A stretch of 61,616 bases of DNA, the filler included, from Choristocarpus tenellus KU-1152 (lineage: Eukaryota; Protista; Phaeophyceae), in assembly GCA_964200185.2 (NCBI GenBank). It is 11 parts of 11 records of this genome, joined end to end, with 100 filler letters (N's around TTAATTAATTAA, not from the genome) between each part and the next. Parts side by side here need not be neighbours in the genome. Positions count along the whole stretch, not along the records: positions 56,966 to 61,616 come from CAXNAD020013635.1; 10 more parts are not named here. One strand, 5' to 3'. A program made the position numbers and the translations under genes. Positions within the stretch are counted from its first letter, which is position 1; each line of letters opens with the position of its first letter. Shown here piece by piece: positions 7,895-61,616 of this stretch. Below the pieces are notes generated by a model, which had not been told where the DNA came from, ran no database searches, and saw nothing but the letters and a program-made list of their open reading frames with translations.

Positions 7895-10800
7895 CACTGT
7901 TGTGAAGCGTCCTCTCAAGGAGGAGGAGGCGCGTTTTTATGCAACTGAGATTATTGCAGCGTTGGAGTGGATACACCTGCATGGGTTTGTGTACAGGTGT
8001 GATACTACTTCGGCTGTACTATTGTCAGAATTGCTTTTTTACGTAAATCAAGCCCAACTCACACACACTGAGAACGCCGACTGTACAGTGTGAGCACAAC
8101 CACTGCATCACTGTGGTCAGAATGGTCTGTTGCCATTCCTAATCCTTTGATTTTGTTGTGCACTTTGTCACTGGGCTGTGCATGTCCTGGGAGTAAACTG
8201 CAAGTCTACTGGAGTATGCCTGGTACTTTGAATACTGCCTTTGGACTGTAATTAACTGCTTTCGTCTTATATTTCAGCCAGTCGTGGAGAGAGTGGGGTG
8301 GATTATTCTTGCCTGGGTCATGGGTAGCACAGTGAATGGATGAATGAGAAAAGTCATGGTCTTTCATACCTGATGACATACACTGAGTATTTTGAAGTAA
8401 GAATATTTCTGCTCTACTTTTTCCCCCCTACTCCCCTCCCCACTTCGTTTGTTCTCCTCTCACTCTACCATGTCTGGCTACTGCATGGTGGGTTGTGCAG
8501 GGATCTGAAGCCAGAGAATGTTCTCATCCACGAGGTAAGGTATCCCAGGCATGTTGGTGTGTGCCCTTGTGTGTCGACCCACTCAATACTGCAATGATGA
8601 ATCTTCTTAGTCAGAGGGTACGTGCTATTGTGCTCAATTGGGAAGAATGATGAGAATATCAAGTAGAGAGGGGAGAGGGGTGTTTGTGAAGCAAGAGTTA
8701 GGTGTAGGCCTTTGCCAGTTGATCGCTGATGTTGATGTTCCTCAAGGCCAGGGCAAAGGAGGGGGAGGTCGTCTAACATGGAAGGTGTTTTGAGTATGTT
8801 GTATGTGTTGAAGAACTCAATGTTCTAAAGGTACAGTAATGTTTTGTGGTTGTGCTGTATGACAAAAGAGGGCCAGTGTTAAGAGACTGCCTTTAATTGT
8901 TCTCTCTTCGTGTATGCATGTAGCTCTGTGTTGTGGTCATGCCCTGGGGAGCAAGTGTAGATGGCAAGAGAGTGATATCATCTATTAGGGAGGTGGTGTT
9001 GATGTTCCTAAGGGCCCCTTTGACTGCCTTGTTGTATGCATATTTTTTTGAAATGTGGAGAGACCTTTCGGCTAACTGTGTGTTTACAGGTGATCTTCTT
9101 CTATAGGCACATACTTTTAAGGGGGGTTAACTGCTTTACAGGCATGGGCATAGTGTATATTGCACAAGGTTCATAAAGTCCTTCATCTCTGATGGGTCGA
9201 AATTGACCCCCTCTTACATGGTTTTGCACATAGGTGTGCTGGGAGTTACTAGTTTCAGGTATGATTGGCATTTTTGTAGGTGGAAGGTTCAGGGTCTCCT
9301 TCTTGTGTGACCTATCAAAGAGATCAGGCAAGGCATTGCATATACGTCTGCCACAATACATCCACATGCATGTGGGTAGGAAGGTGTGGGGATAAACTAC
9401 CTTACAAGCCCTCCATCCCCCCTACCCATCCTCTTAATTCTCTGTGATAATACCGGTTGGACCCTCGAAGAGTGGGCATATCCGCCTTGGGGACTTTGGA
9501 ACAGCGGAGCGAGGGATGTGAGTGATGCCAAATAGCCCTGTACTACGTATTTCACACCACACACACCTTATCCCTGCCATCCCAAAGTGAGGTGGCCATC
9601 CATACTTCACCAGAAGTTTCCAATACTCTAAACCAGAATAGGCACTGCCCGAGGCGAGTTGTTTATCTTCCTTTAAAGAGTGAAGGACAGGTATTCATGC
9701 CTACTGTACCAAGTGAACCATCCCTAGTTGATTGTTTCCCAACTCAACCATGAACTTTCACCACCCCTCCAGTCTTCTAGATGCAGTTACGGCCCCGTCA
9801 GATAGCAAACAGATCTTCGAAGAAGCCAAGGGCCTTTTGGAGGGCGAGGAAGGTGATTCCTCTGACAATGAAGACCCAGCAGTAGAGAGTGGGAGTGGGT
9901 ATATGGAAGGGCAACCAAAAGGGATAGGAGGTGTATCCATGGGCAATGTCAAAAAGGTGCTGGAGGAGAAGGATGGATGGGGAGAGACTGTTGATGAATG
10001 CAACGAGGATATGGAAGAGGAGGATGAGGAAGTGGAGCAGTTTGACCTTCGTCAAGCCAACAGCATCCATGTGGAGCCAGACCCCTATTTTGCTATTCTT
10101 TCTGGGCATGCCTTGGGGGAGGTTTCCTCTGTTGGAGGTGGTACGGACCCTGTGATGACAGATGGAGATATTCAAGGGAGGACAGAGGTTGGGATGTGGG
10201 GTGCTGAGGCAAGGGGCAGTGGTGCTGGGAAAGGGACTGGATCTGGGGGAGGGGGGGAGGTTTCTTGTTGCTGTGGGGAAGGGAACAAGCGGCGATGGAC
10301 AAAATCAGATAAAAACAGGCAAGCAAAGGCCAGAGGAGCAGGGTTGGGGAGTGGAACGGTGACTGGGGCAGGGGCCCAGACTAGGACAGGAAGTGGAGTT
10401 GACACTGGGGGGAGAACAGTTGAGGGGACTGGAGGGGGCAGTGCTGGATCAAACGAGAACGGAGATTGGTAAGGGGGGTGGAGGTATAGGGTGTATGTGT
10501 GCATTTTCTGCATATGAGCTTTTCCCTTCTTGCAGTGGGACTGTTTCGAGGTGATGTGTGTTTGTTAAGGGTGTCTTGGATGGATTCATACCTTGAAGGT
10601 CGGTTCATTATGGTACAATGGGATTGGTGTATAGATGGTTTTGTATACATCCAGTGCGTTAGGTTTTGTGGTTGAATGAGGGTGTAGGGTGTTGGCAAAT
10701 GTCGATTACGCACTTTGTGCTTGGGAAACCTCTTGGTGATGTACTTTAAGCCTGCCAGGTGATACGCAGTACTCCTCCTGAGCCTTGTGCATGCATAACA

Positions 10801-56965: not shown

Positions 56966-58166
56966 ACCCTAAGATTCGCTTGTACTCTTTTTCTTTTTTT
57001 TTTGGGGGGGGGGAGGGGGAGGAGGAGGGGGAGGCGAGGGGCTATTGCACAGGAGACCCGGTTGTTGTTCTCCATTTTTGGATGATTAATCTCACTTTTT
57101 TGTTCTTTTTTGCAGGGTTTAAAGGTACTGCATTAGATGCGCATTGCATTTCAAGCATGATATTAATTAACCACACGTTAGATGGCCCTTGTATTTATCA
57201 TTAATATCTTTTTTATCCATACGTTGTGACTTGGTCCCGACAATCTTTTTTTTTTACACGCCTGCGCAAGGGCGGTTGGATTTCGGTAAATGTGTAAGGC
57301 GTTCTGTGGGAACTCTAGGTTGAACTTGTTTTGTTGGCAACGGTTCTTTTACCAGTGTTCTGGATGGAGTACGGACTTGGTAGACGTGTGCAGTGGGCAT
57401 TGTTATTGTTACACTGCCGAGGGAGTATGATGTCATCCTGCTGAGGGGAGGAGGCTACAAGCCAAGCGCTCCTAACGTTACTTGTGCCTTAGTTATTGTG
57501 GAGGTTAGTTATGATGGAGGTTAGTTATTATGGAGGTTTTTGTCACCCTCTTTCTGCTGTGTAGGGGGTACTGAGGTGATATTGTAGGGTAGAATCTATG
57601 CACGGTGCTATCTACAAGACATGCCTGGAGGGCATCGTTGATTTTCAAAGGCCTCTATGACTGTCCTGTGGGATGTATGTATGTATGTATGTATTATGTG
57701 TCTATGTGTGTATTATATATGGATGTGTGTGGGTGTGTGTGTGTGTGTGTGTGTGTATGGTTTTGAGCACTATGGAGAGAGAGAGAGGTCTTGGCTAACA
57801 ATTTGTTTTCTGCTAATCTTCTTCTATCATAGTACCCTCCTTGGGAGGGTTGACTGCTGTTTTCAGTCAGGCATGGGCATGGTGCATAATTTGCACAAAT
57901 TTCAAAAAAAGAGGATTCCAGCTCAAACGGGCCTAAAAAAATTGGATTCCCCCTCTGAAGATTTTACTCCCCATGGGGGTTGGTTGATTGTAGGGGGTCC
58001 ATTTTAAGAAGGATTTTCATGGATTATCCAACTAATGGTAACATAAAGTTATAATGACAACGCCGGCAAGTCAAGAGGTCAAAGCATCTTTCCATTCTCC
58101 CCATGTGTCTTGTGTGGCATTTTGCATGTTTGCAGGTATAGCCATAGAGCCAAAGATATAGCCATA

Positions 58167-58428
58167 GAGCCAAATTATCTTAGAGGGTAGAACCGTGTCC
58201 ATTTTTGGGGCCAAAATCCAATGTTGCGATTTTGATGTAATTTTGTCTATCGTGTTTGTTAGGAAGTGTCAATATCCTTGTTCCGGACATACCTTTTCAT
58301 GACGTACACGTTCTACCTACTCCGAAATATTTTGGAGCAGTAGGAAAATGCCATAAGAACCCTTAGGGTAGCCAAGCCCCAAATGGACAAACAGGGCAAA
58401 ACTCGTACCCTCTGAGATACTTTCACTG
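58167..58428. mobile_element. MITE family B copy
   Basis: GAGCCAAATTATCTTAGAGGGTA ... TACCCTCTGAGATACTTTCACTG. Confidence 0.87.
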
Positions 58429-58669
58429 AGAACATCGAGGGATGGTGGGAAGGGAAGGTGGACAAACGGAACCTAATAGACTAGGAGAACATGAAACAGA
58501 GTCTTTCTATACTTTACAACAGCAAGCACCTCCTTCTATTGCCTAAGAAAAAAAATGCTGGTGTATTGACTGTGCTGTGCATGGACCTTGAACCCCTTTC
58601 TGAACTATAGTTGGCAGGCTCACCGGTCGATACATCCTTTGAATTTTTTTTTGCGCTGCTCCCTGAACT

Positions 58670-58992
58670 TTCTTATTTTATATTATGTTGTATTGTATTA
58701 TCTTATCTTATCTTATCTTGTGTCATCTTATCTCCTATTGTCTTCTATTATCTTATTTTGCATTGTATTGTGTTGTATTATATTATATTATCTTAGCTTA
58801 TCTTCTATTATCTTATCTTATATTGTAATATATTATATTATATTATCTGGTATTATCTTATCTTATCTTATCTTATCTTGTGTCATCTTATCTCCTATTA
58901 TCTTCTATTATCTTATTTTGCATTGTATTGTGTTGTATTGTATTATCTTATCTTCTATTATCTTATCTTATCTTATCTTATCTTACATTATC
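58670..58992. repeat. Degenerate pentanucleotide (TCTTA/TATTA/TATTG)n tract
   Basis: Direct reading; source of the spurious Ile/Leu/Tyr-rich ORF 58588-59196. Confidence 0.92.
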
Positions 58993-59023
58993 TCTTTTTT
59001 TTTTCTTCCTTGGGTTGGCGTAG

Positions 59024-60649
59024 ATGACATCGACTCGCTTGATGCCGCCTTCGTGCCCGGAACTGGTTGGCCAGAGCCAGGAGGACTCCTTCCAAGGGAG
59101 GCTCACAAATTGGTTGGAGGGGTGGCCAAGGAGGGACTGTGCGGAATCGAGCTGGTTGAGGTAAGGATATTGTTCTGCACTGGAGTGCTTGAGTGAAATT
59201 ATCTTAGAGGGTACGAGTTTTTTTTCCCTGTTTGTCCATTTGGGGCTTTGTGTCCCATGCTGGGTTTTTTTAATGACATTTTACTGACATTTTACCTACT
59301 CCGAAATATTTCAGATGAAAAGGTGTGTCCAGAACAAGGATATTGACACTTCCTAACAAACACGATAGACAAAATTACATCGAAATTGCAACGTTGGATT
59401 TTGACCCCCAAATGGACGCGGCTCTACCCTAACCCTAACCCTAAGATATACTTTGGCTCGTTTGTGTGTATGTAGGAATGGGTTGAGTAGACATGTGTTA
59501 CTATTATTTTTATTATTATTATTATATTATTATAATAGTTGTTTCTATTAATTTTTTTTGTTTGTATATCTGTATGTATTGTCAACTTTCCAGGAGTTCG
59601 TATTATTATTATTATTATTATTATTATTGTTGCAGTTACGAAGCTTTGTTTTTTTTCTTAAAGTGAATGTAATCGTATATTTCATTCTTTTTTTTTCTTG
59701 TTCTAGTACATCTTCGATATATAGTGAAAATAATTAATGATTTCACATGCGTAACGGTTTTGTGCTTAGAGGAGCGTGCGTGTCTGTATGTATGTACTCT
59801 GATGGAACATCTACACCTGTGAATAGACTTGATTAGAAAAAAAAAATGATTTTACAGTGTGGGACTTAAGACCACCCAAATTACTCCTTGAAATTTACAT
59901 TGCTACGAACACCTTTGATCCTGCTCCAAGCAAAGGGCAGAATTTTTATGAAGTCCCTCATGATCTAGGACATGGTGGTTCCAGGTATGGTAGCCCTCCC
60001 CTCACCGACTGCCCCCATTCACACTCCTCCCTATTGCAGTGTCCAATAGTCACACACAAATATCACATGATAGATAGGAGATCGAGCACTTGAGTGAGAT
60101 CGTTGTTCAAGAGTGGGGATGAAAGGGGAGGAGGTATTACGTCCTCTAGGTGACAACAAACAGCCCCCAAGTGAGAAGGAAGGACCATACACCAATTTGT
60201 CACTTCTTGGGGAACAACAGACGGGATGGCCGGCTTGAGCCGATGTTGACCAAAAAAGAAAAGAGGCGTGCGCGCTTAGAGTGTGTGGCTTGCGTTAGTT
60301 ACCATCTCTCTATCGAGACCTCGAGAATTGCTGTTGTTGAAGAGATTTTGATCACTGCAGTGAATGAATGAGGGGGGGTATAAAAGAGACATGAAAAAAA
60401 AAAGAGGTCGTGACGGTATATATATATTATATATATATTATATATATATAAGAGCTGCCAGATATTGTTATTATTATTTCTATTATCGACAAAAAAAAAG
60501 TGTTTCTGGTTTGTTATTTTTGGCAGTGTACTACTCTTACAAAAAAAAACGTATTAGAATTGGTGCAGGTAGTGTGTGACTGACGTTCATTGAGTGTTTA
60601 CCGAGGCTGTAGCAGGGATTTTTTGTATAAACTAGAAGGCGTACTAGCG

Positions 60650-60682
<33 letters not shown>

Positions 60683-61560
60683 TTTGCGGGAGTGTTCTGT
60701 GTCGGTATCTCAGACAAGAAAATTGAGCAAGTGGTTTTCTTACAAAGATATATATATATACTTTTTTTTGTATGGTTGCATTTTTAAAAATATCTTTTTT
60801 TCTTTCAAAATCCACACGAAAAATGTTTTTTTTCATGTTTTTTTTTCCTGAATTAAAAAAAAAATGTCTATGAAGATGTTTATGCCGTTCTTGGAGGGAA
60901 CACTTTCCTTTTTCTTATTTACAGAGAGTTGAGGGAACATCTGTACAACAGTTTGGAATGTGCAGTGTTCTTTCCTTAGGGCCCAGTAAGGCTTCCAGAA
61001 TTGCAACAAGAAGAACACTCAAGGGTATGCCCAGGCCAGACATTTGAGCTGCTTATATCGTCTAGCCAGACATGTGAGTTGCACATCATAGGCATACCTT
61101 CATAGAGCACCTCTTTGTGTATGCAAATAGAACATACACCCGGAGTAGACACGTTACGAAAAATGGGTTAACGCCCCCTCCCCAAGGTACTGGAGCCCTT
61201 TACGTACCTACTCAGTAGGATCTCTTGTATGCAACAGCCCAGTTGTTTTTTACTCTGATGGGACCTTGCATGGGACGCCGTAGAGCTAAGGTGTAGGTAG
61301 TATCTTGCTCACAAAGTACCACCCCATATTTAATGCTTTTCACCTAAGCTGATTTGCAGTTCTCACTTCCCTAACCCTAAGCTGCTAAATCCTCCCACCC
61401 CCGCCCTTGCCCATTCCAGGTTAGCCCCCCCTACGATGTCAGTGATACTACCGCCTTGCAGGGTCTCCGCATCATTGTAGAGGCATTGGGATCCCTTGTG
61501 AGCCATGGCAAGATGGGCGCCCATAAACACATCATCGATAAAGAGTTCACCCCTTTTTGA
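59024..61560 (+). CDS. Arginase/ureohydrolase-family enzyme, probable guanidine hydrolase (GdmH-like); last two exons
   Basis: Exon 59024-59160 (xDIDSLDAAFVPGTGWPEPGGLLPREAHKLVGGVAKEGLCGIELVE; AG acceptor, GTAAGG donor) splices in phase 0 to exon 61420-61560 (VSPPYDVSDTTALQGLRIIVEALGSLVSHGKMGAHKHIIDKEFTPF*). Contains the DxD metal ligands, EVSPPYD and Trp in PGTGW. Confidence 0.88.
59191..59459. mobile_element. MITE family B copy in the final intron of the ureohydrolase gene
   Basis: GAGTGAAATTATCTTAGAGGGTA ... ACCCTAACCCTAACCCTAAGATATACTTTGGCTC. Confidence 0.85.
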
Positions 61561-61616
61561 GGAGGTGTGTGTATATACATCCTGAGTTACATAACTTGGT
61601 TGGTGATAGTGATACC

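Follow-up and report, generated by a model that had tools for sequence, protein, structure and literature searches.

The window analysed here is a stretch of 61,616 nucleotides of DNA from the brown alga Choristocarpus tenellus KU-1152 (assembly GCA_964200185.2), joined from 11 parts of 11 records, and the piece examined within it covers positions 56966-61616 (CAXNAD020013635.1). The piece holds two coding segments, both on the plus strand, read here with good confidence as the 3′-terminal exons of a transcribed gene from the nuclear genome of the brown-alga lineage, belonging to the clade of the guanidine hydrolase GdmH and predicted to encode an enzyme of the same activity. Contigs of four sequencing runs (X1-X4) from one 2024 study were aligned to the piece. 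The features of the gene end are listed below, where Ectocarpus exon numbers refer to the orthologous gene of that alga.

56966-59023, plus strand: 3′ part of the preceding intron, ending in an acceptor AG behind a pyrimidine tract; the match of an X2 contig begins at 59024.
59024-59160, plus strand: penultimate coding exon, 137 nt, equivalent to Ectocarpus exon 9, with the motifs DID, PGTGWPEPGG and ELVE.
59161-61419, plus strand: spliceosomal GT..AG intron, 2259 nt, with its splice joint in X2 and X4.
61420-61560, plus strand: last coding exon, 46 codons and the stop, equivalent to Ectocarpus exon 10, identified by homology and by an X2 contig over 61418-61554.
61561-61616, plus strand: start of the 3′ untranslated region, which follows the stop, is cut by the end of the piece and lies outside contig support.

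The penultimate exon translates as (Y/D)DIDSLDAAFVPGTGWPEPGGLLPREAHKLVGGVAKEGLCGIELVE and the last exon as VSPPYDVSDTTALQGLRIIVEALGSLVSHGKMGAHKHIIDKEFTPF, ending at a TGA stop (61558-61560); its final residues, EFTPF-stop, match the C-terminus of the Ectocarpus protein. The donor GT (59161-59162) stands within GTAAGG directly after the penultimate exon, and the acceptor AG (61418-61419) closes the intron, with CCATTCCAG immediately preceding the last exon. A second acceptor AG (59022-59023), itself preceded by a pyrimidine tract, stands before the penultimate exon. The first two bases of that exon are part of a split codon, which orthologues read as S|YDIDS, and the first residue is probably Tyr rather than the Asp obtained by reading across the acceptor. 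In the list of open reading frames (ORFs) the last exon appears only as a 34-aa TTG ORF at 61456-61560. A tblastn search of three full-length orthologues against the piece found these two exons only, with no upstream coding exon in 56966-59023, and an Rfam scan of the piece gave no match.

The junction between the exons was recovered in contigs of two runs, X2 and X4, as a joint 59158->61418 that skips 2259 nt between GT and AG and, with its 'cut +2', is equivalent to 59160|61420. In X2 it is carried by a 1476-nt contig with a depth of 688, compared with a depth of 2-8 for the intron contigs of the same run. This contig covers 59024-59158 and 61418-61554 with zero differing letters, its record positions 412-546 corresponding to the penultimate exon. 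Its match begins exactly at 59024, which confirms the upstream acceptor, and it extends a further 930 nt 5′ of the exon, giving room for approximately 310 codons, as expected for a protein of about 400 residues. In X1 and X3 the exons and intron are found at similar low depth and in unspliced form only. No library type is on record for any of the runs, and the RNA or cDNA nature of X2 and X4 was deduced from the joint and the depth; given this contrast in exon and intron depth, together with the joint, X1 and X3 behave as genomic DNA and X2 as cDNA. The earlier note on this DNA had proposed precisely this splicing, had observed that the second exon was missing from the ORF track, and had named absence of the 59160|61420 junction from transcripts as grounds for giving up its reading. 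The translations, the GT..AG borders and the X2 and X4 contigs all agree with the proposed junction, and the ORF list holds only the short TTG frame for the second exon.

In X4 the junction carrier is a 233-nt contig (59058-59158 and 61418-61549). The run is labelled as a different organism of the same study, and this spliced contig is identical to the gene over its 233 nt; possible sources are a very closely related organism, co-cultivation or cross-sample carry-over. The X2 match breaks off at 61554, with six bases of the reading frame still to come, and the remaining 274 letters of the contig are unmatched to 61555-61616, a region that falls within the interval (61490-61616) on which there is no X1 or X3 DNA contig. 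A run of T followed by GTGTGTGTATATA begins where the match ends, and the aligner cuts at masked simple repeats. The end at 61554 is probably such a technical cut; alternatively, the assembled piece may truly differ from the contig in its final stretch.

The two exons were searched one by one against all solved structures. The penultimate exon alone matches the Pfam Arginase family PF00491 with 48.2 bits (cut-off 22, E 1.3e-12, profile positions 210-254 of 280); the last exon alone is too short to score on this profile. The best structural match of the penultimate exon is Synechocystis GdmH (7esr/7oi1; 53.9 bits, E 7e-14, residues 293-338), followed by the guanidinase of Nitrospira inopinata (9fek, 49.2 bits). 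The best other enzyme, guanidinopropionase, scores 30.5 bits, a lead of 19-23 bits for the guanidinases. The last exon gives the same ranking (GdmH 21.5 bits, 9fek 16.2, next enzyme 13.4) and matches residues 339-370 of 7esr. The two matches adjoin at GdmH residues 338/339, and the splice junction is therefore predicted from homology alone.

The penultimate exon encodes two metal-binding Asp residues in DID, the Trp within PGTGWPEPGG, and ELVE with its Glu. The Trp aligns with a Trp in both 7esr and 9fek, at the position of Synechocystis Trp305 and N. inopinata Trp313. The same site is occupied by Thr in the solved agmatinases and, within PGTGTP, in guanidinobutyrase (GbuA), guanidinopropionase (GpuA) and proclavaminate amidinohydrolase (PAH). 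The guanidine specificity of the Synechocystis enzyme is known to depend on Thr97 and Trp305, and guanidinases have been defined by Thr105, His222 and Trp313 in N. inopinata numbering (PMC11410670). Of these defining residues, the piece itself covers the Trp only, plus the equivalent of Glu344. The earlier note had identified the gene as a eukaryotic homologue of GdmH, and had drawn attention to the contrast between Thr and Trp at this site. Both points hold: solved GdmH and then the N. inopinata guanidinase are the best matches of both exons, the Trp, the Glu and the two Asp residues are present, and PGTGTP in GpuA, GbuA and PAH stands against PGTGWPEPGG here in the structure-match alignments. 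As an assignment made from sequence comparison, the designation eukaryotic GdmH-type guanidinase is well supported.

An exhaustive search of representative sequences with the penultimate exon returned many short eukaryote-type fragments at 98% identity, along with longer relatives, and word searches showed the family to be widespread in eukaryotic algae: many diatoms, the haptophyte Diacronema, the green alga Tetraselmis, Phaeothamnion, and the brown algae Ectocarpus, Sphacelaria and Hapterophycus. The orthologues considered here are those of Ectocarpus (P0264), Phaeothamnion (P0259), the diatoms Fistulifera and Chaetoceros, Diacronema (P0238) and Tetraselmis (P0260). Between the penultimate exon and its counterparts in brown algae a single residue differs (Ile for Met in CG(I/M)ELVE; 98% identity), and the last exon is 83% identical to the Ectocarpus C-terminus and 93% identical to that of Phaeothamnion. 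The Ectocarpus orthologue has 10 exons, of which exons 9 (at 9699-9836) and 10 share their boundaries and phase with the two exons described here. Its exon 9/10 intron lies at the same codon and is approximately 400 nt long, as compared with the 2259 nt found here, where the intron is enlarged by a repeat element of the miniature inverted-repeat transposable element (MITE) type and by simple repeats. In Phaeothamnion, both sites are uninterrupted. The intron positions seen here are also exactly where two public gene models from brown algae break: that of Hapterophycus canaliculatus (P0273) ends at the exon 8/9 boundary (…AVYMS), and that of Sphacelaria rigidula (P0272) continues past the exon 9 donor into intron sequence (…ELVEVYIRRKWRW). 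In a cDNA-derived fragment from a relative (P0010), exon 9 is followed by exon 10 in a shifted frame, suggesting that the acceptor used there was alternative or aberrant. Taken together, these comparisons place the source among the brown algae or in a closely allied sister group. A different protein, P0217, likewise found on a 1476-nt contig, was considered as the full-length product of the gene and rejected, being 87% and 72% identical.

The orthologues provide the residues that lie outside the piece. Against solved structures the Ectocarpus protein scores 536 and 524 bits with the two guanidinases, 174 bits with guanidinobutyrase and 115-132 bits with solved agmatinases, and it is aligned to 7esr from chain residue 14, that is, from within the GdmH-specific N-terminal extension and before the arginase core. 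It carries the Thr in GGTTYRPG and the His in ERMHTTP. A wider alignment comprised 136 algal or unnamed relatives, 80 bacterial ones and 5 outgroups. In it, the six metal ligands and the counterparts of Thr97, His222, Trp305 and Glu344 are conserved in 134-136 of the 136 and in every one of the 80 bacterial sequences. At the Trp site, Thr or Val is found in the outgroups; the DxD and Glu positions are invariant across the family. The N-termini of brown-algal orthologues (MPPFNLRALGRAAGVARRRE…) are arginine-rich and free of acidic residues ahead of the HHP motif at which the bacterial proteins begin, a composition that suggests a mitochondrial presequence. In Ectocarpus (L082 1-2736) and Phaeothamnion (L081 57-632), a mitochondrial carrier gene (PF00153) is located just upstream of the orthologue on the opposite strand, and this conserved divergent pair might reflect a shared promoter and a linked transport function.

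A quick maximum-likelihood tree was calculated, with support given by the Shimodaira-Hasegawa-like approximate likelihood ratio test (SH-aLRT). Every sequence with the Trp falls into a single clade (SH-aLRT 86), distinct from two sister proteins that bear Thr and from the distant outgroups, and the eukaryotes form one group (support 81). Each of the two exons, entered as its own row, falls in a clade of brown algae and Phaeothamnion (SH-aLRT 99) within the Trp-bearing clade. The phylogenetic check advised in the earlier note places the gene in the Trp-bearing clade, by means of separate exons and not the joined peptide. The sister proteins P0065 (397 aa) and P0123 (368 aa) resemble the clade in the type of their N-terminal extension but carry Thr and not Trp at the diagnostic site (PGTGTPEPGG and PGTGTPDFGG respectively); P0065 keeps the Thr and His of the guanidinase set. 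The characterised guanidinases are represented in this tree only by short in-frame pieces of frameshifted look-alikes (P0077 and P0071), on branches of 2-10.

The closest bacterial genes, mostly from Proteobacteria, share 64-77% identity with the Ectocarpus orthologue along almost its entire length. In 15 of the 16 bacterial loci scanned with Rfam, a guanidine-I riboswitch lies upstream on the same strand. In one locus (L004), ureD-ureA-ureB-ureC directly follow the gene, and in another (L054) a NitT/TauT-type binding protein, permease and ATPase lie between the riboswitch and the gene, an arrangement like that described for Synechocystis (PMC12704784). This bacterial context lends indirect support to the predicted hydrolysis of guanidine. 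Among the bacterial relatives, the greatest similarity to the algal proteins, 77% identity, is shown by a sequence from a metagenome-assembled genome of SAR324 (L001 4001-5119, on a 307-kb contig; P0282). Its C-terminus resembles that of the algal proteins (…HKSIIDKPFQPF), and its locus is the sole one scanned that lacks the riboswitch; the sequence could stem from near the lineage that donated the algal gene, or it could have been misbinned.

Both introns flanking the penultimate exon contain a MITE-like element:

58167-58428, no strand assigned: MITE-like repeat copy 1, approximately 262 bp, with terminal inverted repeats AAATTATCTTAGAGGGTA and TACCCTCTGAGATACTTT.
59190-59460, no strand assigned: MITE-like repeat copy 2, inverted relative to copy 1, with which it forms inverted pairs, inside the 2259-nt intron.

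The element is approximately 262-271 bp long, with 18-nt terminal inverted repeats that are 89% complementary; its copies are 93-96% alike, and there is one per intron, in opposite orientations. The summed contig depth on it is 1e5-1e6 in X1-X3 (2e5-8e5 for copy 2 alone). More than 26,000 X1 contigs matched the piece, nearly all of them on the two MITE-like intervals, and hundreds of contigs break at 58203 and 58427, in copy 1. The element is among the most abundant repeats of the genome. Bacterial contamination is excluded by the introns, by the host repeat at very high copy number and by the intron positions held in common with Ectocarpus. The proposal of a real nuclear gene with a MITE in its intron, put forward before this analysis, accordingly stands.

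On this evidence, the gene is an orthologue of the 10-exon Ectocarpus gene, and it would encode a protein of approximately 420 residues in the GdmH/guanidinase clade of the arginase (ureohydrolase) superfamily. The predicted reaction is the hydrolysis of free guanidine, with urea and ammonium as products, at a dinuclear centre whose metal is probably Ni2+ and would be held by His and Asp ligands, two of them (DID) encoded in the penultimate exon. The Trp of PGTGWPEPGG would narrow the pocket such that only free guanidine fits and larger guanidino compounds are excluded. The enzyme may be mitochondrial, in which case its urea could feed urease.

A comparison with characterised systems shows what the algal gene has kept and what it has lost or gained. 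GdmH (Sll1077 of Synechocystis sp. PCC 6803; 7esr, 7oi1) has DID, PGTGWPEPGGLLPREA, VEVSPPYD and the pocket-narrowing Trp in common with the gene described here, and the N-terminal extension and Thr in common with the algal orthologues. Unlike GdmH, the algal gene is nuclear and interrupted by introns, lacks both a riboswitch and an operon with an ATP-binding cassette (ABC) importer, is not known to have HypA/HypB-like partners, and has a predicted activity, while its algal orthologues carry the arginine-rich presequence in addition. The N. inopinata guanidinase (9fek) has Thr105, His222, Trp313 and Glu344, the equivalents of which are kept in the orthologues, and comammox loci resemble the eukaryotic gene in having no adjacent Ni chaperone genes; the N. 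inopinata gene differs in being bacterial, riboswitch-controlled and in the service of energy metabolism. The gdmH-like genes of Proteobacteria (L002-L080; Ruegeria, Shimia, Acidithiobacillus and Azospirillum) have the HHP...GW N-terminal motif and all the diagnostic residues, as does the orthologue, but their operons contain the guanidine-I riboswitch together with ABC importer or urease genes, a context absent from the alga. Guanidinobutyrase, guanidinopropionase (3nio, 3nip), proclavaminate amidinohydrolase and the agmatinases have the superfamily fold and metal ligands in common with the algal enzyme, and GbuA and GpuA also have the VSPPYD motif. They differ in having Thr in place of Trp and no N-terminal extension, and they match the penultimate exon with about 30 bits or less and the orthologue with no more than 174 bits.

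The database names raise a different reading, in which the gene encodes a true agmatinase (SpeB-type) that makes putrescine and urea from agmatine, for polyamine synthesis or for the heterokont urea cycle. Nearly all family members are named 'agmatinase' or 'probable agmatinase 2', the protein belongs to PF00491, and its best matches in NCBIfam are agmatinase models. NCBIfam has no guanidinase model, and hence it offers only a negative test for agmatinase. In that test the Ectocarpus orthologue stays below both agmatinase cut-offs (TIGR01230, 153.3 against 174.3; NF002564, 204.9 against 302), and the Phaeothamnion orthologue behaves alike. The Trp occupies the site at which the Thr of agmatinases and guanidino-acid hydrolases leaves room for the alkyl chain of the substrate, and the orthologue's 536 bits against GdmH compare with only 115-132 bits against solved agmatinases. 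Moreover, 'probable agmatinase 2' is the old name of Sll1077, which has been shown not to cleave agmatine (PMC8390497; PMC12186494). We consider an agmatinase quite improbable. Slightly less remote, though still unlikely, is an enzyme of the GdmH clade that acts on another small guanidine compound (methylguanidine, hydroxyguanidine or guanylurea) or works with Mn2+, and that clears an internal by-product and has no part in nitrogen uptake. All that the pocket residues demand of the substrate is that it be very small; comammox guanidinase loci are without Ni chaperones, and the structure of the comammox enzyme showed nickel/manganese sites (PMC11410670); and the likely mitochondrial presequence of the orthologues fits an internal metabolic role. 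Against this, the orthologues are approximately 64-77% identical to riboswitch-controlled bacterial enzymes along their full length and retain every active-site residue, so that a switch to another substrate is hard to accommodate.

The least credible explanation, to which we give hardly any weight, denies that the exons belong to a working nuclear gene and takes them for a dead remnant or for bacterial contamination. It could draw on the presence of only two exons in the piece and on the gap in DNA contigs at 61490-61616. It is contradicted by intact reading frames at 98% and 93% identity to orthologues, by canonical splicing at orthologous intron positions, by an abundant spliced contig with 930 further nt upstream of the penultimate exon, and by the very high-copy host repeat in both flanking introns. 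Several points have to be set against the favoured reading, the guanidine hydrolase. The piece covers 92 of about 420 residues, and the Thr, the His and the N-terminal extension are known from orthologues only. The alga's own full-length protein was not found in the representative search or in two word searches of the protein collection, which returned orthologues only. The positions of the stand-ins in the tree are not relied on, and the link to the characterised guanidinases accordingly comes from pairwise scores. The term RNA, as applied to X2, is deduced from the depth contrast in a run with no recorded library type. The eukaryotic genes lack the riboswitch context of their bacterial relatives, and no search for a HypA/HypB-like partner was made. 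Finally, neither a description nor an assay of any eukaryotic guanidinase was found in the literature searched.

Nor did the literature searched contain a paper linking guanidine hydrolase with heterokonts or diatoms, and a search of it for accessory proteins of urease in brown algae had no usable result. Funck et al. 2022 reportedly list heterokont algae, in their abstract, as probable carriers of guanidine hydrolases, and the earlier note likewise speaks of heterokont homologues predicted from sequence. The gene adds a well-documented member and a test case to an already predicted kind, and introduces no new concept. Guanidine hydrolysis has so far been bacterial in experiment (Synechocystis and comammox Nitrospira), and the gene described here is a spliced, expressed eukaryotic orthologue that retains the active-site parts encoded in the piece. 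On balance, we lean towards the view that the 'agmatinase' of brown algae, diatoms and haptophytes is a working and probably mitochondrial Ni-dependent guanidinase. If this is true, major marine primary producers can draw nitrogen from free guanidine, or recycle their own, via urea and urease; the agmatinase step in schemes of the heterokont urea cycle and polyamine synthesis would rest on misannotation; and eukaryotes would have to load nickel into a second enzyme besides urease. Confirmation of the activity would make guanidine a candidate nitrogen source or internal metabolite of dominant marine phototrophs, and the widespread 'agmatinase' annotation would need correcting.

The preceding intron also contains a tandem repeat, just upstream of the penultimate exon. 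A telomere-like (CCCTAA)3 expansion at 59427-59444 lies at one terminus of copy 2 of the MITE-like element, and further CCCTAA motifs are found at 56967-56972 and 61370-61381. The tandem repeat is the following:

58671-58993, no strand assigned: pyrimidine-rich minisatellite of TCTTA units with a 160-nt higher-order repeat, identified by Tandem Repeats Finder and as direct repeat family D1.

A 202-aa ORF at 58588-59196 was rejected as an artefact, in which an in-frame reading of this minisatellite is fused to the penultimate exon. Prokaryote-style gene callers would report it as a false low-complexity protein fused to an arginase motif. Several database fragments of 72-124 residues (P0001-P0008) look like the same false minisatellite-fused calls in related species.

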